Shown here piece after piece: positions 1-51,098 of a DNA stretch of 64,000 bases; position 1 is the stretch's first letter, and the number at the start of each line of letters is the position of its first letter. The notes beneath the pieces are model-generated. The model saw only the letters and a program-made list of their open reading frames with translations, searched no databases and was not told the origin of the DNA. Position numbers and translations under genes: made by a program. The DNA is from Neoechinorhynchus agilis. Its lineage: Eukaryota > Animalia > Acanthocephala. Location: the NCBI GenBank assembly GCA_051530055.1, contig CM121342.1, positions 3,471,489 to 3,535,488 of the forward strand. The letters run 5' to 3'.

Positions 1-3000
1 GTCGTCGATATAATGAACTTGGTGCGTCCGTATGGTTTACGATCAAGTAGTTCAATTGTTGGTCTCTCAGAAGCGAGTGCGACACTTGCAAGAGTATCCA
101 TGACTAAATTCACCCAAAGCATTTGAACAGCCGTCAATGGAACACGACTGATCGCCGCTGCGGATATAACGGACAGAAATCCAGCCGCCACATTAGCCGT
201 TAGTTGAAATTGAAGGAATTTGGCTACGTTATCGTAAACATTTCGACCCCACATAAGAGCCTTCACAATACTCGTGAAGTTATCATCCAGAAGGATAATA
301 TCGCATGCCTGTTTTGCTATATCTGTTCCCTGGATACCCATCGCGAATCCAACGTCGGCGCTTTTAAGTGCAGGGGCATCATTGGTACCATCGCCAGTAA
401 CTGCGACAACCTCACGATTCGCAGAAATTTTACTTGAGATTATTCCATTGACAAGAACGAATTTGTCGTTTGGAGATGAACGAGCGAGTACGCGAAGTCT
501 TGGCCAGACGCTGTCGAACTTTGTCTGCGAAAATCCGCCGTATTCGTCGTTTATGATCTCATTAAAAGATTTGCTCTCTAGCGCTAGAAAATCCTCCTTT
601 GGATTTAGAATGCCACACTGAGTAGCTATTGATCGAGCAGTGTTGATATTATCACCAGTTACCATTCGAACGGTCACTCCTGCTCTTTGACATTGTCTGA
701 TCGCTGGAGGGACTTCTGGTCTTACTGGATCTTGAATCCCGGCGATACAAAGAAGAGTCAGGTCTTTTCCAACGACCAATTCATCTTCCCAATTATAAGA
801 CGGAGAATCACCTTCATCAGAAGGAACTAATTTATACGCAACGCAGATTGTTCGGAGACCAGCGCATGCCATTGATTCAATGACTGATTTAATAAGGACA
901 TTTCTTCGGTTCTCGTTTAAAACTTGAGGACCAGAAGTACCGTTCGCTGAAACATCACGGCATCGTTCCAACACGACTTCACTGGCCCCTTTGGTGTAGA
1001 CACAGTATCCTTGGTTCGGTTTCCTCAGTACGGTAGTCATCGTTTTTCGCTTTGAATTAAACGTAAAGACTTTAAACGCATCTTTGTCTGGGTATTTTTC
1101 TCGATATGTCTCGTAGTTTCGTCCGAGAGTCGTAACGAGGCCAAGTAAAGCACACTCAGTCTTGTTCCCAAGCTGTTGTGGGAGATCACCAGGACGCTCG
1201 ATCTGTATTTGTGGAAAAAAAGTTGAACACAGCCACTAAACCCCCCCCCTCCACTGACCTGTTGAATTGATGAATAATTCGAATTTGTCGAAATACTTTC
1301 ACACAGTATGTCCACCAAATCCTCGGAAACTTCATTTGCCGCATTGTCAATTACTTTGTAGTGCTTACCTAATTACGTTTGTTGACATAAATATTTTAAA
1401 ACTGCAAACTTTCGTCTTGGGCAACGGAAAAAAGTACGTTTTTTATAAAGGTGCTTAAATAAAGAACCGTTATATTAAGAAACGACAATAAAAACATAGA
1501 AGTGAGATTTGAAATTATGGAGAACATTAAATTTTAGTCTATCCCTTTCTTGTCCGGCTTATTTTTAGGCATAAAGCCAAACCAATTACATCAGAGAGTC
1601 TCTAATGCAAGGTTAAGAGTTTGAACATTCCTCCGGATCCTCAGATACCTCCCGGGGAGGCGGGGAGGTATTTCGTCTCCTTTTCGGTACGGATTCGGAC
1701 CACTTGACCCCTAATCGGGATCACGGGCATTAGTCCACTTGACCACCTCGACACAACTACGAAATGTCAAACTCAGCCAGTTTATCGACTCGGGGTGAGC
1801 GCTGTGTTCTATTTTTTTAAGTTTTACTGGCAAGCCGGTCAAATCATTAAATTACGTTCATTTTTTCAAAACAAAAAAGCGTAATTTTCGTGCAGCTCTT
1901 TTTTTTGCCCAAAATTAAGTCGAAGTGTATAAAATGTGGAAAAAAAGAATTGCTTACCTGCCAAGTAGCATTGAGTAACAGTCATTCTATTAGTAGTCAG
2001 AGTTCCGGTCTTATCTGAACAAATCGTAGTGGCATTTCCCATTGTCTCGCATGCGTTCAAGTGCCGGACCAAATTATTATCGGACAACATCCTCTTCACA
2101 GCAAATGCCAACGCTAAAGCTACTGCGAGAGGAAGACCTTCAGGAACAGCGACGACAATCACAGTAATTCCTTGAACGAAACTATCAATAATGTACCGAA
2201 TGTGATTATTGTTCCACGGTTGTTTTTGAATAACGTAAGTCAGCACACAGAACCGGATTATGAGTGCGATGAACGTGAGTATAGCTGCACAGAGACCAAC
2301 AATTGCGATAACACGAGCAAGTCTTGCGAGTTTTCCTTGAAGAACAGATTTCATTTTCTTCGTTTTCTTTTTTTCGTCTCCTTTGTTCTCATCTGACTTG
2401 GATTTTTCTTGAACTTTTGATTCGGATAACAAAGCAAACACTTTTCCAGTTTGGGACCGAAGACCAACAGCCGTCACAATCATCGTCCCGCTTCCCTCCA
2501 TCACAGTCGTCCCTGATAACAAAGCTCGGTTCTTTGCATTCTTTTTAACATGATCTGATTCTCCAGTAACACTCGATTCATCAATCGTTAAATCGTTTCC
2601 TTGAATCAAAAACCCATCAGCTTGAATAAGATCGCCGTATTTAATCGCATAAACGTCACCAACGAGAATATCGTCTTTAAGAAGTTCCTGCATTTGTCCA
2701 TCCCTCACAACACTGACTTTTTTCTCACCTTCTAACTTTTTCTGGAGGTCTCGGAATTGTCTATCTTTTTGCCAATCATTTACACCGGTAACGAGGACGA
2801 CTATGAGTACGGCTACGAATATCGCGACGCCTTCAATCCACTCCAAATTTGTTTCTTCGTCCGCGGGGTATAACGGTCGAATGGATTCAACCTGAGGTGG
2901 GTGATAAAACGAAAGTCCAAATGATAAAACCGCACATAAAAGAAGAATTACAAGTAGTGCGTCCTGTAGAGCATCCCAGCAGAAAGTCAGAAAATGTTTT

Positions 3001-3290
3001 GGTTTGCGTTGAGGAAGACTGTTTCGTCCGAAGCAGCTCGCTCTTAGCTCAATATTATCTGGATCTGATGCAACTGAGAGACCTTTATCTTTATCGGTCT
3101 TAAGAATTTTGGCAAGTCCTTCAATGCCACCGCAAGTCGTTTCCAATTGAATAGTCGCTTCGGATCCCCGTTCATTCATTAGAGCTGTAAGGTCTTCTGC
3201 TGTTAACTCGAAAGCACCTCGGCTAGCTGATTCAAATGAATCCGCATTTTTTTTATTCTGTCGCTGGAAGTGGGAAGCAAAATTCCCCAT
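1..3290 (-). CDS. ATP2B: Plasma-membrane Ca2+-transporting P-type ATPase (PMCA); 3' part lies beyond the left edge
   Basis: Motifs [46 protein letters not shown] and [10 protein letters not shown] are present. Exons are about 3290-1959, 1368-1259 and 1208-1, with GT-AG introns read by eye. Confidence 0.95.
1625..1752 (-). mobile_element. tRNA-derived SINE-like element with a partial hammerhead core, in a PMCA intron
   Basis: Minus strand has A-box TGGTCAAGTGG at position 8 and B-box GGTCCGAATCC at tRNA positions 52-62, followed by GGAGACGAAATACCTCC...GGAGGTATCTGAG. It is homologous to 52231-52370. Confidence 0.7.
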
Positions 3291-3588
3291 ATCTACAAAG
3301 AAAGCAAAGGAAAATGCGACGAATCTAGTGTGTTTAAGAAATGATAGTTTTAAAGCACAAACGGATTTGGCAAAAAACAACACATGAGTCAATGCGTAAA
3401 AACGTGGAGTGTAAGTCAACGCTTTTCGGTTAAAATTTATACACTGAAACGGGGGAGAAAAACAAGTTCGTGGGAGGTGGCAAGCTGCTCATTCGTGGTG
3501 GTGGTGGTGGTCGTCGAAAACGGCCAGAGAAATCAGTACAACAAAGTATTTTTGCTGCTTTTAATGGATGAATCAGTACAAGTCCATG

Positions 3589-6500
3589 TCAAAATTTAAG
3601 TTTACCCTTCTTTTTGGATGGAGGTTTTGTTATTGAACACTCTGGAGGGCTCGAGCAACTCATCCAACCGGGTAAACGTTTCTTTGACACCTCCATTTTC
3701 CGATCCGAGCGTTGCTGACTTGAACATACCGTCATGCCGTACTTCAATTTAAGGACAGACAAAATAAAGCGAAGCTCTTCCTCGCCAATATTCAGTTGAG
3801 CATCTTTTATTGTACGTCTTAGTAGTGAGAAATCTCCAATATTGGAACAAGCAGGATTCTGACGAACGCACTTTTCTACTTGATCGATCATTCGCTCATT
3901 GACGTTCAATCTTTCAATGTCCACAGGAAGTTGATGGGTCATCGCTACAACTAGACACTCAAACGCTTCTGATCTAGATTCCATTTGATCGATTGACTCT
4001 TTTTGAATTTGAAATCTTCGATATATGCTTCTTTGCTTTTCAGTCACAAACCTATTGAGCGACCTTTCAAGTTGACCGTAATCGAACATTTCATTGGACG
4101 ATTGAACCGCATGGTGTGAATTGGAAACGTTGGTGCTTAAGTCATTTTCAGCACAAAATTGATTTATAAAATCCACAAACGAGCGACCAACTGTTTCAGC
4201 TTTTGCTAAAGGAAATTCCTCGATTTGTGATAAATACGAGGTTTGAGAAGGACGCTTTCTCGCCAAACTAGCGATGCTTTTATTATTGGCTATTCTATGG
4301 GCTGGTATACCGGATTCGGCTGCTAGTTTATTCCTGATCCTGATCAATGCAGCGTAGAGTTTAGCTTCGTCTTCGTTGTTTGCATGTGAAGCCTGAACAA
4401 CTCGTCGCTGTGAGAATGAAGAATTAGCCCAAGGACGTTCGTTTATACCACAAGATTGTCGTAGTCTTTACTTTCGAGAAAAATACAAAACAGCGCCGCA
4501 AATATCTAAATGACCACAATGATCATCGCCGGATATCGAAATGCGCTTAATCAGATTAAAATTAGCACTTTCTGCTCAACGAACAAAATATGAAAGACGA
4601 AATTTGTGAACTGAAGCATCGATTTTAACATAAAAGACACCATATTATATTTTCTTAAGTCAGGATCGTTTGTAATCGATTAAGAAAAATGGGTCTTTAT
4701 GGAAATGCATCCTGAAAAAAATAAAAAGATTGCTTACCCCATAAACAAATCGAATTTATCAGGTTTTAAAGAGGAATTTTTAAACAAGGAAAATTTTCAT
4801 ATATTTCCACTAAAAAAAAGTTTCGTTTAAAAATTGAACCGACGAACCAAATCAATGGGTTAGATCACCGAAAATTACCAAACGTGAGCAAAAAACAAAG
4901 AAATTGAGCGTGCGAATGCTCAAAAGATCTATCACATAATATTCTGGGAGATGATGTAATTATTGATAAAAGTAAAATTACGGAAAATTCTAAATCAACA
5001 ATAGGATTGTGATTGAAATGTATTTGTAGAAATTTTGAAGAATAATCAACAGATAAGGACTAAGATTGAAATATGTTGTTCATAATACGACAATCTTTGG
5101 ATTACAATGATTTGCGGCAATATGCAGGTTGAAGAATATTGATTCGTCACGTTTATGGGCAACACTGATGTAGACTTTTTATTCTTTGGAGATGAAGGAA
5201 CCAACATTGATTGATTCGTGGACATCCATTGGCGTCCAAGTGAACTTATTCCAATACTGCAGGCTCCAAAAGCGACACCTTGAATGGGTATTTCGTCGAG
5301 ATATCCCAAATCGATCATTTTTCTTCCTAATAGAAAATCATTACCTTAGACGGCTTTACTAAAAGACTTACCGAATTCCTTCCACCATTGTTCACTACGA
5401 ATATTTCGTCCTGTTCCATAGTTCAACATCGACCGCATTCTATCACTAATTCTCGAGCTTGTCTAAATCAGTCTATTATCTTCGACATCAACACGAATAC
5501 TCACTGATCCGCGTACAAATTGAACGTACATCACAAGTCCATACCTTCCTCCAAGTGCCTCAATGGCACTAAAGAGAATTCGAGCTTCTTTTGTCACGTC
5601 TTCACTTGTAAGACTCGGTTCAATTGGACCTCGACTACAATTGTCGCAACAAAACTCGGTTTGATCAGCAAACGACAAAGATTCTCCAAAATGTTCAAGT
5701 ATTATTCTATCAAAAACACAAACATCATTGACGGATTAAACAAAATAGACGTAACCTTCGCCTACAAGACATTGTCGTCAAATAAACGCTCATTTTTTTC
5801 TGCATTTCGAACTGGTGCTTAGTGTACTCTTTATCTCCATCACAGTTTGCAGGAACTATTAAGCGTCTTTTAAAACCCAAATCAATATTATAGTTATGAT
5901 CGATAAGATTACCTATTTAAAGCAAGATCTTGTTTGTCGTAGAAAGCATGGCACCTGCACCGTTGACCATCTCTGCCACCTCTTCCAATTTCTTGATAAT
6001 ATGAATCCATATCGCGAGGAGCGCCATAATGAACGACATTTCTTATATCAGGTTTATCGATACCCATCCCGAATGCGATTGTGGCAACAATGACTTGACA
6101 TTCATCGTTCATAAACGCGATTTGAGCACGTGTCCGGGCATCGTTTCCAAGACCGGCATGGTAGATGCTAACGCTTAAACCTGCCTCTTTCAGATTATTG
6201 AACACTAACTCCGTCATGACTTTTGTCCGACAGTAGATGATCGTTGATCCATCAAACGATACCGTTTGGTTCTTGTTGAATGTCTCTGAAAGCATACCAG
6301 CACCGAATAAATCATTTAAAGCATGGATTCTACGAGAAAAAAAAGAAACTGCGATGAATCCAATGCTCAACGGGATTTTGACTTCTTAAAGATACTCCCA
6401 AGTATAAGTTTTTTCGGTCCACTGATGAACTGACGAACAGTGGAGATTGAAGACAAAGAGATCGTGAAATGTCCTGCCGGACAGATAATGTAGCCGTCGC

Positions 6501-42000: not shown

Positions 42001-42890
42001 ATGCGATCCGCAATTGTCTTTGGTTTGATATTTGCACTTGGCTTCGTTGCCGTGTCCGCCAATCACCGGAGAATGAGGACGTCAGTCGGCGAATCGGAGA
42101 AGAGAATATCAGAAAACGCTAAACGAACTTCCAATGAGGACTCTGCAGAGACAACAGCAGTACAAAATGAAGTGAGAAATCAAAGAAGAAATACGGAAAA
42201 GATGGAAGGTGATGGAATGGATGAACAAAAGACATCGGAGGAATCGATCAGCGGTGATGATACTTCCAATAAGGACTCTGCAGAGACAACAGCAGTACAA
42301 AATGAAGTGAGAAATCAAAGAAGAAATACGGAAAAGATGGAAGGTGATGGAATGGATGAACAAAAGACATCGGAGGAATCGATCAGCGGTGATGATACTT
42401 CCAATGGGGACTCTACAGGGATAACAGAAGGAGAAAATGGATTGGGAAATGGAGGAATAATGGAAAGAAGGGTGGTAAGGGAATGGGTAACACGACATCG
42501 GAGGAATCGAGCAGCGGTGATGATACTTCCAATGAGGACTCTACAGGGATAACAGAAGGACAAAATGAAGTGAGAAATCAAAGAAGAAATACGGAAAAGA
42601 TGGAAGGTGATTCAATGGATAAACAAAAGACATCGAGGAATCGAGCAGCGGTGATGATACTTCCAATGAGGACTCTACAGAGACAACAGAAGGAGAAAAT
42701 GGATTGGGAAATGGAGGAAGAAATAATGGAAAGAAGGGAAGTGGGGGAAAGGATAAACAAAAGACACCCAAGGAATCGAGCAGCGGTGATGATACTTCCA
42801 ATGAGGACTCTACAGGGATAACAGAAGGACAAAATGAAGTGAGAAATCGAAGAAGAAATACGGAAAAGATAAAATGGCGGTGGTGATTTA
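42001..42890 (+). CDS. Secreted acidic S/D/E/T-rich tandem-repeat protein (38-aa modules); frameshifts after ~42480
   Basis: Signal peptide MRSAIVFGLIFALGFVAVSA and repeated SNEDS..T....NEVRNQRRNTEKMEGDGMDEQKTS. A TATA-like GTATATAAGG lies at about 41923. Confidence 0.7.
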
Positions 42891-43657
42891 CAAAATGATT
42901 TATCATCTTTAGAATATTAGATAGCCGGTGAGACGGTCTCTCATTGAGATTGTTTCCCGAATAAACACTTCTGCATTATGTTTTTTTTGTGCTCGGCTGG
43001 AGTACGACGATTCCATTTGGGTGATTGATTGCTGACGTTCGATTATTGCTTTTGGTACATGAATAGAGAATATTGAGGAGATTTATAAGTTTATTTTTGT
43101 TTCATGATCAAAGGGTTCAAAATCTCAAAAAACATTAAAGTCCGTTGACCATTTTAATACCATGATGATATTCGTTAGGAATGATTACGATCCTCCATTG
43201 GAAATGGCCGGAAATGTTTCTTAACCAAAGAACAATTTTGAAGTTTATCCTTTAGACGATTTCATATTTAAGAAGTCGATGAAAGCCGTAGATGATTCCC
43301 ATATTTCAAAGTCAATATTTGTTTAGAATTGATTCTTCATCTGCATAAATCAGACTTTAAGCAAAAATCATTTGAATCGTAGTTCGATAGAAGAATGTGA
43401 CGTCATACTTTTTTGCGCTAATATTCGAATGACCGCAATTTTTTGAAAGAATTCGATGCGTTTTCATTAATTATTTAGTCTAATAAATTCGATCGAGTTA
43501 TTCAATTTCTTCGAGATTTCGAGGCCTCAGCCTCCTTATCAAGCATTGTTTGTTAGTTTATTTTTTAAAGAAAATCAAATATTCTTGAAGACGAAGAGGA
43601 GTGGTGTCGTGAGTGTATAAAGAAAAAGATTGAATTTTTAGATAGGCTGAGCAGTTG

Positions 43658-44524
43658 ATGGAACGGCAGAATGAATCGGACACAAGTGAAATTCCATTAT
43701 TGATGGATCCCTATTCATACTGCCAATCCGAATTCTTAAAAACTGAATCGGAATTTAATCCGTTTGATCAAATAAAGATCGAAGAACCCATTTTTACGGC
43801 TTCTTCAATAATCGAATTGGAACAAGGAAGCTTTAATGCGAGGAATAATGCGCCGTCGATTCCAACACCCAGTCCTTCAGACGAACAACCGAAAGACCAA
43901 GAACGCTTCCATATCTTCATTGAAAATGTAATGGTTAGTTTTTCGGTTGGACGGTCGGTCGACGTCGACCTGATAGCGAAAACTTTGGATTTTTCAACTT
44001 GTGAACTTGACGTTAACGGTGTTCATCACGGTGTCGTGAATTTCGTTGATCCAATGGGACAAATACACATTTATCCGTCAGGACGCGCTCTCTTGTGCAA
44101 CTCCAAAAGTCGAAGACGGGCTTATATGGTCACTGAATGTTTTGTAAATATGCTAAAACGGAAGCTTTACTCAGATATTTCGGAGATTTTTGAATATAAA
44201 GTGATTAATGTATACGGACGATGTCAACTCTCTTTTCGTATAAAACTTAAAAAATTGTTCAAAGAGATTGAAAAACTGAAAAAGACAAGCAACGATCGAG
44301 CATTAACCGACTGCATCTATACTCCTTTAGTCGAAAAACGTTTGGATATTCTTGTTGGACCTTACGATACCGTAATATCTGTCTATTCTGACGGAAACCT
44401 CGTCCTGAAATCCAATTGTGCCGTGAAGATTGGAGAAGCAGCGCAAGCCGCATATCCGTTTTTAAAGAGAGCCGAAGGTGCCAAAAGGAAATCGAGAATG
44501 AATCGAATTAACCAATGTTCTTAA
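43658..44524 (+). CDS. Divergent TBP-family protein (TLF/TRF2-like)
   Basis: Two TBP half-repeats: IENVMVSF...VDVDLIA...IHIYPSGR and YKVINVYGRCQLSFRIKLKKL...YTP...ISVYSDGNLVL...AYPFL. Confidence 0.85.
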   Translation: MERQNESDTSEIPLLMDPYSYCQSEFLKTESEFNPFDQIKIEEPIFTASSIIELEQGSFNARNNAPSIPTPSPSDEQPKDQERFHIFIENVMVSFSVGRSVDVDLIAKTLDFSTCELDVNGVHHGVVNFVDPMGQIHIYPSGRALLCNSKSRRRAYMVTECFVNMLKRKLYSDISEIFEYKVINVYGRCQLSFRIKLKKLFKEIEKLKKTSNDRALTDCIYTPLVEKRLDILVGPYDTVISVYSDGNLVLKSNCAVKIGEAAQAAYPFLKRAEGAKRKSRMNRINQCS

Positions 44525-44640
44525 CCGATTTTAGGGTTTTTTTACGATTATGAAAATAAAGAATTTCTAGGCAGTGTCGCTCACACACGAAAGCAATGAT
44601 TTTGTTATTAAATGGTGTGAAGAATCCTCTCTTTTTAATT

Positions 44641-47600
44641 ATAGACGAGTTTTTGTGCATGCGAAAATAGCACGTTCGTCGGACGGTTCTCATATTCTCA
44701 TTTCTCCATGAGTTCCGGTGACGTCATCAAGGCCTTATTCGACGCAAAAATCGGCGTTTCGCCGTTAATATTTAATACGTCACGAACACGAATTCTTTTA
44801 TGAACAAGTTTTCGTGCATGCGAAAATAGCACGTTCGTCGGACGATTTTCCGATTCGCATTTCTCCATGAGTTCCGGTGACGTCATCAAGGCCTTATTCG
44901 ACGCAAAAATCGGCTTTTCGCCGTGATTCAAAAATACGTCACGAACACGAATTCTTTTATGAACAAGTTTTCGTGCATGCGAAAATAACACGTTCGTCGG
45001 ACGATTTTCCGATTCGCATTTCTCCATGAGTTCCGGTGACGTCGTCAAGGCCTTATTCGACGCAAAAATCGGCGTTTCGCTGTTAATATTTAATACGTCA
45101 CCAACACGAATTCTTTTATGAACAAGTTTTCGTGCATGCGAAAATAACACGTTCGTCGGACGATTTTCCGATTCGCATTTCTCCATGAGTTCCGGTGACG
45201 TCGTCAAGGCCTTATTCGACGCAAAAATCGGCGTTTCGCTGTGAATCAAAAATACGTCACGAACACGAATTCTTTTATGAACAAGTTTTCGTGCATGCGA
45301 AAATAGCACGTTCGTCGGACGATTTTCCGATTCGCATTTCTCCATGAGTTCCGGTGACGTCGTCAAGGCCTTATTCGACGCAAAAATCGGCGTTTCGCTG
45401 TTAATATTTAATACGTCACCAACACGAATTCTTTTATGAACAAGTTTTCGTGCATGCGAAAATAACACGTTCGTCGGACGATTTTCGGATTCGCATTTCT
45501 CCATGAGTTCCGGTGACGTCGTCAAGGCCTTATTCGACGCAAAAATCGGCTTTTCGCCGTGATTCAAAAATACGTCACGAACACGAATTCTTTTATGAAC
45601 AAGTTTTCGTGCATGCGAAAATAACACGTTCGTCGGACGATTTTCCGATTCGCATTTCTCCATGAGTTCCGGTGACGTCGTCAAGGCCTTATTCGACGCA
45701 AAAATCGGCGTTTCGCTGTTAATCTAAAATACGTCACGAACACGAATTCTTTTATGAACGAGTTTTCGTGCATGCGAAAATAGCACGTTCGTCGGACGTT
45801 TCGCCGATTCGCATTTCTCCATGAGTTCCGGTGACGTCGTCAAGGCCTTATTCGACGCAAAAATCGGCGTTTCGCTGTTAATATTTAATACGTCACCAAC
45901 ACGAATTCTTTTATGAACAAGTTTTCGTGCATGCGAAAATAACACGTTCGTCGGACGATTTTCCGATTCGCATTTCTCCATGAGTTCCGGTGACGTCGTC
46001 AAGGCCTTATTCGACGCAAAAATCGGCGTTTCGCTGTTAATATTTAATACGTCACCAACACGAATTCTTTTATGAACAAGTTTTCGTGCATGCGAAAATA
46101 ACACGTTCGTCGGACGATTTTCCGATTCGCATTTCTCCATGAGTTCCGGTGACGTCGTCAAGGCCTTATTCGACGCAAAAATCGGCGTTTCGCTGTTAAT
46201 ATTTAATACGTCACCAACACGAATTCTTTTATGAACAAGTTTTCGTGCATGCGAAAATAACACGTTCGTCGGACGATTTTCCGATTCGCATTTCTCCATG
46301 AGTTCCGGTGACGTCGTCAAGGCCTTATTCGACGCAAAAATCGGCGTTTCGCCGTGAATCAAAAATACGTCACGAACACGAATTCTTTTATGAACAAGTT
46401 TTCGTGCATGCGAAAATAGCACGTTCGTCGGACGATTTTCCGATTCGCATTTCTCCATGAGTTCCGGTGACGTCGTCAAGGCCTTATTCGACGCAAAAAT
46501 CGGCGTTTCGCCGTGAATCAAAAATACGTCACGAACACGAATTCTTTTATAGACAAGTTTTTCGTGCATGCGAAAATAGCACGTTCGTCGGACGATTTTC
46601 CGATTCGCATTTCTCCATGAGTTCCGGTGACGTCGTCAAGGCCTTATTCGACGCAAAAATCGGCGTTTCGCTGATATTCAAAATACGTCACGAACACGAA
46701 TTCTTTTATGAACAAGTTTTGTGCATGCGAAAATAACACGTTCGTCGGACGATTTTCCGATTCGCATTTCTCCATGAGTTCCGGTGACGTCGTCAAGGCC
46801 TTATTCGACGCAAAAATCGGCGTTTCGCCGTGATTCAAAAATACGTCACGAACACGAATTCTTTTATGAACAAGTTTTCGTGCATGCGAAAATAACACGT
46901 TCGTCGGACGATTTTCCGATTCGCATTTCTCCATGAGTTCCGGTGACGTCGTCAAGGCCTTATTCGACGCAAAAATCGGCGTTTCGCCGTGATTCAAAAA
47001 TACGTCACGAACACGAATTCTTTTATGAACAAGTTTTCGTGCATGCGAAAATAACACGTTCGTCGGACGATTTTCCGATTCGCATTTCTCCATGAGTTCC
47101 GGTGACGTCGTCAAGGCCTTATTCGACGCAAAAATCGGCGTTTCGCTGTGATTCAAAAATACGTCACGAACACGAATTCTTTTATGAACAAGTTTTCGTG
47201 CATGCGAAAATAGCACGTTCGTCGGACGTTTCGCCGATTCGCATTTCTCCATGAGTTCCGGTGACGTCGTCAAGGCCTTATTCGACGCAAAAATCGGCGT
47301 TTCGCTGTTAATATTTAATACGTCACCAACACGAATTCTTTTATGAACAAGTTTTCGTGCATGCGAAAATAACACGTTCGTCGGACGATTTTCCGATTCG
47401 CATTTCTCCATGAGTTCCGGTGACGTCGTCAAGGCCTTATTCGACGCAAAAATCGGCGTTTCGCCGTTAATATTAAATACGTCACGAACACGAATTCTTT
47501 TATGAACAAGTTTTCGTGCATGCGAAAATAACACGTTCGTCGGACGATTTTCCGATTCGCATTTCTCCATGAGTTCCGGTGACGTCGTCAAGGCCTTATT

Positions 47601-47925
47601 CGACGCAAAAATCGGCTTTTCGCCGTGATTCAAAAATACGTCACGAACACGAATTCTTTTATGAACAAGTTTTCGTGCATGCGAAAATAACACGTTCGTC
47701 GGACGATTTTCCGATTCGCATTTCTCCATGAGTTTCCGTGACGTCGTCAAGGCCTTATTCGACGCAAAAATCGGCGATTCGCTGTGATTCAAAAATACGT
47801 CACGAACACGAATTCTTTTATAGACGAGTTTTGTGCGGTGCATGCGAAAATAGCACGTTCGTCGCACGTTTCGCCGATTCGCGTTGCTCCATGAGTTCTC
47901 ATGACGTGGTTAAGGCCGTTTTCGA
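44641..47925. repeat. Tandem array A9: ~20 units of 162 bp, between the TBP-like gene and TSR2
   Basis: CTCCATGAGTTCCGGTGACGTCGTCAAGGCC recurs every 162 bp. Confidence 0.98.
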
Positions 47926-48430
47926 AAGGTGGACGGATTTGCAACTAGCTATTGAACATAACATGTGCGACGCGGCGGATCCGGTTGGTTTGTATGAAAT
48001 GTTCATCGACGAAACCGTTGTCATTGCTGATAGTAGACATGCGACCGTGTCCTTGGTGGTGGTGGTTCGTGCCATGGTCGCTTGAAGTGTTTCGTCGCCC
48101 GTAGATTTAGCAGAATTTCTAAAGACGAAGATGTGCGACGCATTCAATGTCATCTCCGAGGAGGAAACAATCATGTCAGTCGCGTGTACGGTCGCTGCGA
48201 TCTTAGCCGATAACGATCGACAGGAGGCGCTTAATGATTATTGTGGGAAAATCAAACGAGCCGGTGGTGTAGCTCAAAGTCGAAGAGATGAAGTGGACGA
48301 AAGCGAAGACGAGGAAGAGAGTGAGGGGGAGGAAGATAAAAAGAAAGATAATAAAAAGAAAGAACTGGACATTGATGAAGACGGTTTTATTCTACCCTCC
48401 GGAAAACAACAGTGGAAATTTCGACTGTAA
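47891..48430 (+). CDS. TSR2: Pre-rRNA-processing protein TSR2 homolog
   Basis: VKAVFERWTDLQLAIEHN, LAEFL...DAFNVISEE, acidic tail and EDGF. An in-frame TGA at 48083-85 requires a 3n intron (e.g. 48033-48104). Confidence 0.8.
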
Positions 48431-49534: not shown

Positions 49535-51098
49535 TTGTATTGTATTGTATGCAACGGTACTTTCCTACGTTGCATCGTAGGTATAAGCCCGTCAAATTGA
49601 ATTAGACTCCGCAAGGGATATAAAATACACGACAGCAGTCCTGTTATGCGGGCAATTCGCGTCTCTTAAAATCAGGTCATCGTATGTACGACAGTTCGCT
49701 ATGCCTTTACGATAAAATGTCGTTGGCTTCCACAAAAGGAACTGTTGCACGACCTGTGGGCAAGATGCCTCGGACCGAATTATATTGGCCGTGAACTGCA
49801 GTCGTCTGCGGCGCAAATATTCACTGGGCGGTTGGACTCCGGCTCTCTTATACAGTACTTTGTTGGTCACTTTATCTGACCATCTGACCTTGAACGCCGT
49901 ACGTAAGAGAGATGAATGATTTTGGTCCAACTGCCTCGTCGCCGTTGGTGACAGTGTCCAGGCCTCTTCATTGTAGTAGAGAATGCTCTCAATTAGAGTC
50001 CTGAACAGCTGCGAACGGAGTTCATCTGTCAAAGATTCACTGTCAAACAGTTGTTTAATTTGCCCCATTGCTCTTCAAGCTATAGCTCTCCGTCGGCTGA
50101 CATCCGCACTCACCTCAAAAGCGACAGCTCCCAGATAGAAATACCGCTCTATCTGTTTCAATTGACCAACGCCATTCGGCCCTTCGCGAGAGACTGTATA
50201 CGCGACATGCGGAATCGTCAAGAATTCCGTCTTTTTCGAGTTGATGGTCAGACCAATCATGCTCGCCCTCTCGCACAGTCTATTTAGCATGCGTTGATCT
50301 CCTTCGACTGTTGAGGACATCAATACGATGTCGTCGGCATATGCTACGTAGGAGGCGCGTATCTTAGAATACCTGCGACCTCTTTTCCTCAACAGAAGAA
50401 ATCCATCTTCATCATTCGGTAGTGCCCATCTCATTACCCAATCAGGCACCAAGATGAAGAGGAAAGGAGCCAATGTGTCGCCCTGCAGAACATCTGAAGT
50501 GGTGGAAATGTATTCTGTCAAACCGTCGGCTGTCTTGACGGCGGACCTTGTGTTTTTATATAATGCCATAACGGATGTGACAATGATCGGCGGCACTCCA
50601 TACTCCTTTAAGATACCGCCAATCATCGTTCGATTTACCGAATCGAAAGCTCGACGGAAATCAACAAATACAAGCGTCACATCCCTTTGATGAATTCGTG
50701 CCTCCTCGAGGATCCTCCTCAAAGCCAATATGTGCTCTGTGGTGCCTCGAGCTTTCTTGGAGCCGTTCTGTTCAATTCTTAGAAACGGTTCGAGGATTGG
50801 CTGAATTCGGCGTCTCAAAATGCTGCTGAAAAGTTTTGCCGTATTGGACATCAAGGATATACCTCTGTAGTCCTCCACCTTTGCCGAGCAGCATTTCTTG
50901 GGGATCATTGTTAAATGCGCCGTTTGCTAGATTTGAGGTACTGAGCCACCATTCATTATGCCATTCATTATCGGTATGATTTTTCCGGCAATAGATTCAA
51001 ACCTCAGTACCTCTGCCATTATCCCATCTGGGCCTGATGCACGTCCCGCGCGCATCATTTTCGCCGCAGCGATCGCTTCCTTCACGGAAATCGGTCCA
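49535..51098 (-). mobile_element. RTE-like LINE, 5'-truncated, with 7-bp target-site duplication
   Basis: SGPDGI, YRGISLMS, DFRRAFDSV, QGDTLAPFLF, YADDIVL. (CAATA)n tail at the 3' end. AGCGAAT at 49528-34 and 51099-105. Confidence 0.9.

Follow-up and report, generated by a model that had tools for sequence, protein, structure and literature searches.

A tandem array upstream of the divergent TSR2 gene of Neoechinorhynchus agilis, probably generated in situ from the 5′ end of that gene

A tandem array that ends inside the coding sequence of a gene raises the question of which of the two gave rise to the other, and of whether the repeats do anything for the gene that they adjoin. Such an array lies directly upstream of TSR2 in the acanthocephalan Neoechinorhynchus agilis, a parasite of fish, within a 64,000-nucleotide stretch of contig CM121342.1 that was analysed as a whole (the window). 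A first-pass annotation, made from the letters of the window, had offered two readings: either the 5′ end of the gene was amplified in tandem where it stands, giving a multimerised promoter with short upstream ORFs, or the N-terminus of the gene came from the repeat. In both cases the outcome was taken to be an unusual form of copy-number control for a gene of ribosome biogenesis.

Tandem Repeats Finder returned one array at 44648-47925, with a period of 159 and 20.6 copies (95% matches, 0 indels, score 5699). The whole array spans 44631-47925 on the forward strand. In it, 20 units, in each of which gene-derived parts (S) and a linker (X) add up to 159 bp, precede a 21st S formed by the 5′ end of the gene itself, and the order reads flank-(S-X)x20-S-rest of gene. 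The start-codon context CCATGAGTT (nine bases) occurs 21 times in the array at a spacing of 159 nt, with the exception of one interval of 160 nt, one of 157 nt and the last one of 163 nt, which is due to a 5-nt insertion in the gene's own copy. The period of 162 bp assigned at first sight is therefore corrected to the 159 bp given by Tandem Repeats Finder and by most of the spacings, the final interval alone being longer than 162 nt. Its count of about 20 copies agrees with the 20 full units, to which the gene's own partial 21st is added.

An alignment of the 20 units and both flanks resolved the unit into three parts, with about 105 nt per unit copied from TSR2, from about −70 to +35 relative to the ATG. 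The first part matches the TSR2 CDS over its initial 35 nt, the second is the linker X of 51 to 57 nt, and the third is about 67 to 73 nt matching the DNA immediately upstream of the TSR2 ATG. In a representative interior unit (46933-47091, forward strand), a decoy ATG and the CDS-derived 35 nt occupy 46933-46967, X occupies 46968-47024, and the upstream copy 47025-47091. The left flank meets the first unit at approximately 44630-44640, at the start of the upstream copy, and the first S copy at this edge lies at 44636-44742 (forward strand). At the other end, the gene's own S copy (47819-47925, forward strand) comprises about 72 nt of upstream DNA and CDS positions 1-35, such that the array stops at +35 of the real CDS, within its first 12 codons. 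Some 100 bp of upstream sequence had been described as shared between repeat and gene; the sharing was found over about 70 nt, up to the joint of left flank and first unit, and it does not include the linker.

The gene was then placed as follows. In the NCBI model, exon 1 lies at 47891-48064, an intron of 60 nt at 48065-48124, and exon 2, which encodes an acidic tail and ends with a TAA stop, at 48125-48430, all on the forward strand. Exon 2 matched at 100% a single database protein, the NCBI hypothetical protein ACOME3_005371 of N. agilis (159 aa), whose start is the ATG at 47891. This is the first in-frame ATG, and Pfam alignment begins at residue 5, in keeping with the first-pass view that the last unit carries the real TSR2 start. 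When the complete assembly was searched in six frames with PF10273 (TSR2/WGG), there was exactly one match, at 47906-48184; it scored 28.3 bits (cut-off 26.8) and covered profile positions 4-79 of 80, reading through the intron. The match is marginal, since the spliced NCBI model scores 23.0 bits and falls below the same cut-off; exon 1 alone gave 21.3 bits. For these Pfam searches the exons were searched separately and the NCBI model was used unaltered. An alternative GT donor would end exon 1 at 48032; the resulting GT-AG intron of 72 nt (48033-48104, forward strand) would retain the conserved DLAEFLK stretch.

Among the 30 nearest protein-atlas clusters, 28 were TSR2 (score 0.90, 204 of 256 shared features). 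The motif of the TSR2/WGG family is ...ENGWGG, and the naming Trp-Gly-Gly is absent here, the protein reading AIEHNMCDAAD at this site. A phmmer search against 1.84 billion representatives at E ≤ 0.001 recovered only the protein itself, which indicates that it is very divergent, and there was no PDB sequence match. Relatives for a cross-species comparison of the 5′ ends were not obtained either, as a word search returned the NCBI entry only and a HMMER search nothing further. A second TSR2 copy as donor of the repeat was rejected, because both a protein search of the assembly and the PF10273 search gave a single gene. We accepted the gene as the worm's TSR2, a single-copy and divergent member of the family that does not retain the WGG motif.

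The first-pass annotation had named a genome-wide family of the unit as a finding that would speak against amplification in place, and had advised a search for one. In BLAST with a two-unit query, no unit was found outside the array in the 46.2-Mb assembly, and two patterns (25 and 32 nt, with up to 3 mismatches) likewise matched the array only across the same 46.2 Mb. A dispersed satellite family was rejected on these grounds; as the unit is confined to one locus, no genome-wide family stands against the proposal. Because the codons that were copied belong to the conserved TSR2 domain and the unit occurs at no other locus, the repeat was in all likelihood derived from the gene, not the reverse. 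The copied part includes residues 5-12, which correspond to profile positions 3-10 of PF10273, and when the first 12 residues were removed from exon 1, the Pfam score fell from 21.3 to 13.2 bits, so that the copied codons contribute about 8 bits. Had a satellite come first and its last repeat supplied TSR2 with the start codon and the first 12 codons, the array would extend into the CDS just as it does, and position alone cannot separate these two readings. However, a borrowed N-terminus would hardly add 8 bits to a TSR2 profile; no other occurrence of the unit was found in the assembly, and at the left edge of the array it is the same gene-derived segment that is joined to unique flanking DNA. 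We therefore regard recruitment of the N-terminus from the repeat, the second of the two original readings, as very improbable, while the first, amplification of the TSR2 5′ end in place, is favoured by a unit unique to the locus and an array ending inside the first 12 codons.

Units in the interior of the array are approximately 95-100% alike, and both edges are more divergent than the interior, with an identity to the consensus of 88% for the first S copy and 79% for the gene's own copy. The two edges share five states that are missing from the interior consensus, including TATAGACGAG and AAAATAGCACG, and a few interior units (S8, S17, and S13) still carry some of the states seen in the upstream copy of the gene itself. 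Compared with the gene's own upstream copy, interior units differ at 14 or more positions and by the 5-nt indel, and the TATAG word, retained at both array edges, is altered in 18 of the 20 interior copies. Two unit types were distinguished by a clustered difference in X; they alternate as A-B-A-B at the left and then form multi-unit blocks. Nucleotide diversity among units was 0.003 in the CDS-derived part, 0.022 in the upstream part, and 0.077 in the linker; the low diversity of the CDS-derived part could reflect constraint. Unequal crossing-over from which the edge units are excluded usually leaves such a pattern, and it has likewise been described for the amphioxus 'mirage' repeats (PMC3087553).

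The linker, which holds the variation hot-spot that sets the length of the decoy ORFs, gave no clue to its source. Local and global alignments, judged against shuffles and genomic controls, yielded no significant match of X to the left flank or to the CDS (p = 0.04-0.84), and against S on either strand there was an 8-nt inverted match at most (p = 0.03-0.08). A source was likewise absent from the rest of the window, from a 200-kb sample, and from the rest of the whole genome. Our guess is that X may be filler inserted at the first duplication junction.

We verified that a second array of the same build is present at an F-box/WD40 (FBXW7-like) gene in C2:7155586-7165585. At positions 2992-5984 of this segment, a 139-bp unit is repeated in 21.5 copies that are 97% alike; the last unit contains the gene's ATG, and the array ends 15 nt past it. 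As at TSR2, the gene's own copy has diverged, here by about one quarter in the coding part. The two arrays differ in that the FBXW7-like unit has no linker, since local sequence of the gene between −55 and +84 accounts for all of it, and shows CCGAA microhomology at either breakpoint, and in that a clear splice-acceptor word stands directly before its ATG. Given the common build, the same type of event has taken place at least two times on this chromosome.

Arrays of this size class are abundant in the genome. About 10 of them, with units of 135-491 bp, make up 33% of the 64-kb window, and a 200-kb sample (20 x 10 kb from three contigs, with units of 120-450 bp counted) contained 34, covering 24%. 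Some of the sampled arrays fall in small families, and many are local. A simple ORF screen of 43 sampled arrays revealed no convincing case of 5′-end capture besides TSR2. Such arrays are not mentioned in those portions of the genome paper's text that were searched (PMC12690905).

On the left of the TSR2 array lies a TBP-domain ORF (43655-44524, forward strand, stop codon at 44522-44524; PF00352, 42.7 bits against a cut-off of 22.9), followed by an AATAAA hexamer that resembles a poly(A) signal for that gene at 44555-44560 (forward strand). The gap between the TBP-domain gene and TSR2 before amplification would have been about 150-190 bp. We propose that a TSR2 segment from about −70 nt to +35 was duplicated there, with some 55 nt of filler at the junction, and that the resulting 159-bp unit was multiplied to 20 copies, which unequal crossing-over or gene conversion may have kept homogeneous. 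The gene retains the proximal copy, which is now 21% off the array consensus. The 20 upstream copies would act as decoys, offering a start codon in the same context, mostly with an ORF of 19 or 31 codons. On this proposal, the array would have arisen through a process at work across the genome, by which intergenic DNA becomes filled with arrays of 120- to 450-bp units, and would not be a dedicated control of TSR2. That the array is specific to this locus, was born in place from the TSR2 5′ end, and is a near-neutral by-product of genome-wide repeat-making is the reading that we consider probable.

Each decoy ATG sits in the same context as the real start, and the ORFs that follow are 19 codons long in 10 units, 31 in 8, 21 in one, and 39 in one; the upstream ORFs of about 31 codons in the first-pass annotation are thus present in 8 units and not in the rest. 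Across the first 12 codons, array and gene differ at 6, of which 3 differences are synonymous and 3 nonsynonymous. Several differences had indeed been reported as synonymous, but 3 of 6 does not exceed the chance expectation. Among the units themselves, the copied coding part has three variants, all of them nonsynonymous; this speaks against a selected peptide, and nothing in the sequences suggests one.

The opposite strand was also considered. One minus-strand frame is free of stops, with ORFs of 328, 281, and 407 aa, and since 159 nt equals 53 codons, a frame that is open in the consensus unit remains open throughout the array. By our estimate, however, one open frame out of six is expected about one time in three for a 53-codon unit. 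The frame is split into three by the 160- and 157-nt units and a substitution, its amino acids are altered by the variable hot-spot, and its Pfam matches are weak and additive, none passing alone. A repeat protein encoded on the minus strand was rejected on account of the broken frame and of Pfam matches that amount to additive noise, and we find it scarcely credible. An array of RNA genes was rejected as well, with 0 Rfam matches at E ≤ 1 and no fold signal (z = −1.15 and −0.96).

More weight is due to the proposal of a functional promoter or enhancer multimer, in which 20 copies of the upstream region would recruit factors or polymerase and the copy number would tune TSR2 output. Each unit carries about 70 nt of immediate upstream DNA, which is about half of the original 150- to 190-bp intergenic space, and diversity is low in the gene-derived part. 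The array is also the CpG maximum of the window (observed/expected ratio of 2.46 versus 1.22), and every unit contains two inverted GTGACGT heptamers, which are CRE-like and number 40 in the array versus 3 in the other 60.7 kb. Set against these features are the extent to which the interior copies have been altered, TATAG included, and the up to 20 short ORFs that transcripts from upstream units would bear ahead of the real ATG. Furthermore, the same build recurs at the unrelated FBXW7-like gene, and arrays are everywhere in the genome sampled. We consider a working promoter multimer possible but rather unlikely. Copy-number control on a ribosome-biogenesis gene, as put forward in the first-pass annotation, likewise appears less likely than a by-product, because arrays are abundant, the FBXW7-like array is alike, the interior copies are altered, and the decoy ORFs would be a burden.

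A broader version of function would have a genome-wide process repeatedly amplify stretches of single-copy DNA of about nucleosome size, with the 5′ ends of genes such as TSR2 and the FBXW7-like gene among its targets and with the arrays retained as banks of transcription factor sites or promoters or as insulating spacers; this is unlikely. In its spacer form, an array at this place would insulate the TBP-domain gene and TSR2, which are tightly packed neighbours. One may also ask whether the array is real while its size is a product of assembly, the copy number being mis-estimated or the haplotypes being different. The genome paper describes a MaSuRCA hybrid assembly of ONT and Illumina reads with haplotypes purged (PMC12690905), which leaves room for this, and in an amphioxus draft genome an array of the 'mirage' type was reported to be mis-assembled (PMC3087553). 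Yet the units show a structured pattern of variants, which is not readily expected of a repeat that was collapsed or inflated, and 3.3 kb fits within the length of long reads; an array size that is wrong in this manner seems to us quite doubtful. The preferred reading is still that of an array born in place from the TSR2 5′ end as a near-neutral by-product.

The closest known kind of array is the amphioxus 'mirage' minisatellite, which has been described for Adh3 and for the globin genes BflGb6 and BflGb9 (PMC3087553). Both mirages and the TSR2 array are head-to-tail copies of a short segment straddling the edge of a coding exon, and the unit sizes are alike (150-160 bp in the globin mirages [PMC3087553], 159 bp here). 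In both, the authentic copy is at the array end, the interior copies evolve in concert with the edge copies excluded (PMC3087553), and the normal message is not thought to be disturbed by the repeats. In contrast, mirages span an intron-exon boundary within a gene and have 3-9 copies, whereas the TSR2 array is intergenic, spans the boundary of upstream DNA and start codon, and has 20 copies; it also possesses a linker whose source was not traced and resides in a genome where a quarter of the DNA sampled consists of such arrays. At either end of the array, an acceptor-like pyrimidine run plus TATAG falls at the left edge of S; the ATG has no known intron upstream of it. Spliced-leader trans-splicing is present in bdelloid rotifers and absent in Brachionus (PMC1925144). 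If it occurs in N. agilis, the TSR2 and FBXW7-like arrays would qualify as mirages strictly defined.

Two other systems invite comparison. In the rDNA intergenic spacer of Drosophila and Xenopus, spacer promoters and enhancer repeats are tandem promoter copies upstream of the true promoter, in Pol I units whose transcription and enhancer activity have been demonstrated. The TSR2 array resembles them in that a putative promoter region is repeated in tandem ahead of the gene to which it belongs, but it is attached to an ordinary protein-coding gene, its copies include the start codon and 12 codons, and it is known here from sequence. Promoter VNTRs, such as the upstream repeats of insulin and MAOA and the tandem repeats of yeast promoters, have units of 14-30 bp, and like them the TSR2 array, a tandem repeat just upstream of its gene that may vary in length, could alter expression. 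The TSR2 unit, however, is 159 bp and gene derived, whereas VNTR units are not copies of a start codon or CDS.

Taken together, these results suggest that the TSR2 array, taken alone, is probably a neutral structural oddity. It is at the same time a clean example of a satellite that would have been born from unique functional DNA, an upstream region with its start codon, and it places 20 decoy start sites ahead of an essential ribosome-assembly gene. The array marks a wider pattern, in which, for an animal genome as small as 46 Mb, a quarter to a third of the sampled DNA lies in locally made arrays of 120- to 450-bp units and at least two of these include gene starts. Thus, N. agilis is a candidate system for the study of the origin of tandem arrays and of the means by which genes tolerate or exploit them.

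The tandem array lying upstream of the ribosome-assembly gene TSR2 (window 44631-47925) is unusually rich in CpG, with an observed/expected ratio of 2.46 versus 1.22 for the whole window. Every unit contains a pair of inverted, CRE-like GTGACGT heptamers, and one member of the pair falls within the copied codons. We found that the 60-nt intron of the NCBI TSR2 model (window 48065-48124) removes the conserved DLAEFLK stretch, while an alternative 72-nt GT-AG intron predicted from the sequence (window 48033-48104) would retain it. The six-frame match to TSR2 scored above the Pfam cut-off, whereas the NCBI model fell below it.

The upstream neighbour of TSR2 (window 43655-44524) encodes a divergent TBP-domain protein, whose PF00352 match (42.7 bits) covers one repeat. 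Just downstream of TSR2, two adjoining minus-strand ORFs (window 49592-50908) resemble reverse transcriptase in carrying a YADD motif, and the pair is probably a decayed non-LTR retroelement.

Tandem arrays with 120- to 490-bp units account for 33% of the window. When contigs C1, C2, and C3 of the assembly were sampled in twenty 10-kb pieces (L012 to L031), 34 such arrays were counted in the 200 kb, making up 24% of it. In the searched text of the genome paper (PMC12690905), no mention of tandem-array abundance was found. A 135-bp coding repeat was also observed in a secreted-looking acidic repeat protein (window 42127-42870). It shares 93% identity with an array that lies on the same contig, ~150 kb downstream (sample L019, 9597-10000), and that may represent a paralogous repeat-protein gene.

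Another 5'-end array was present at an F-box/WD40 (FBXW7-like) gene in locus L032 (G000:C2:7155586-7165585, where G000 is the N. agilis assembly). This array (L032:2992-5984) comprises 21.5 copies of a 139-bp unit derived from positions -55 to +84 of the gene, and its last unit holds the real ATG, at L032:5969. Both breakpoints carry CCGAA microhomology, and each ATG in the array is directly preceded by a splice-acceptor word.
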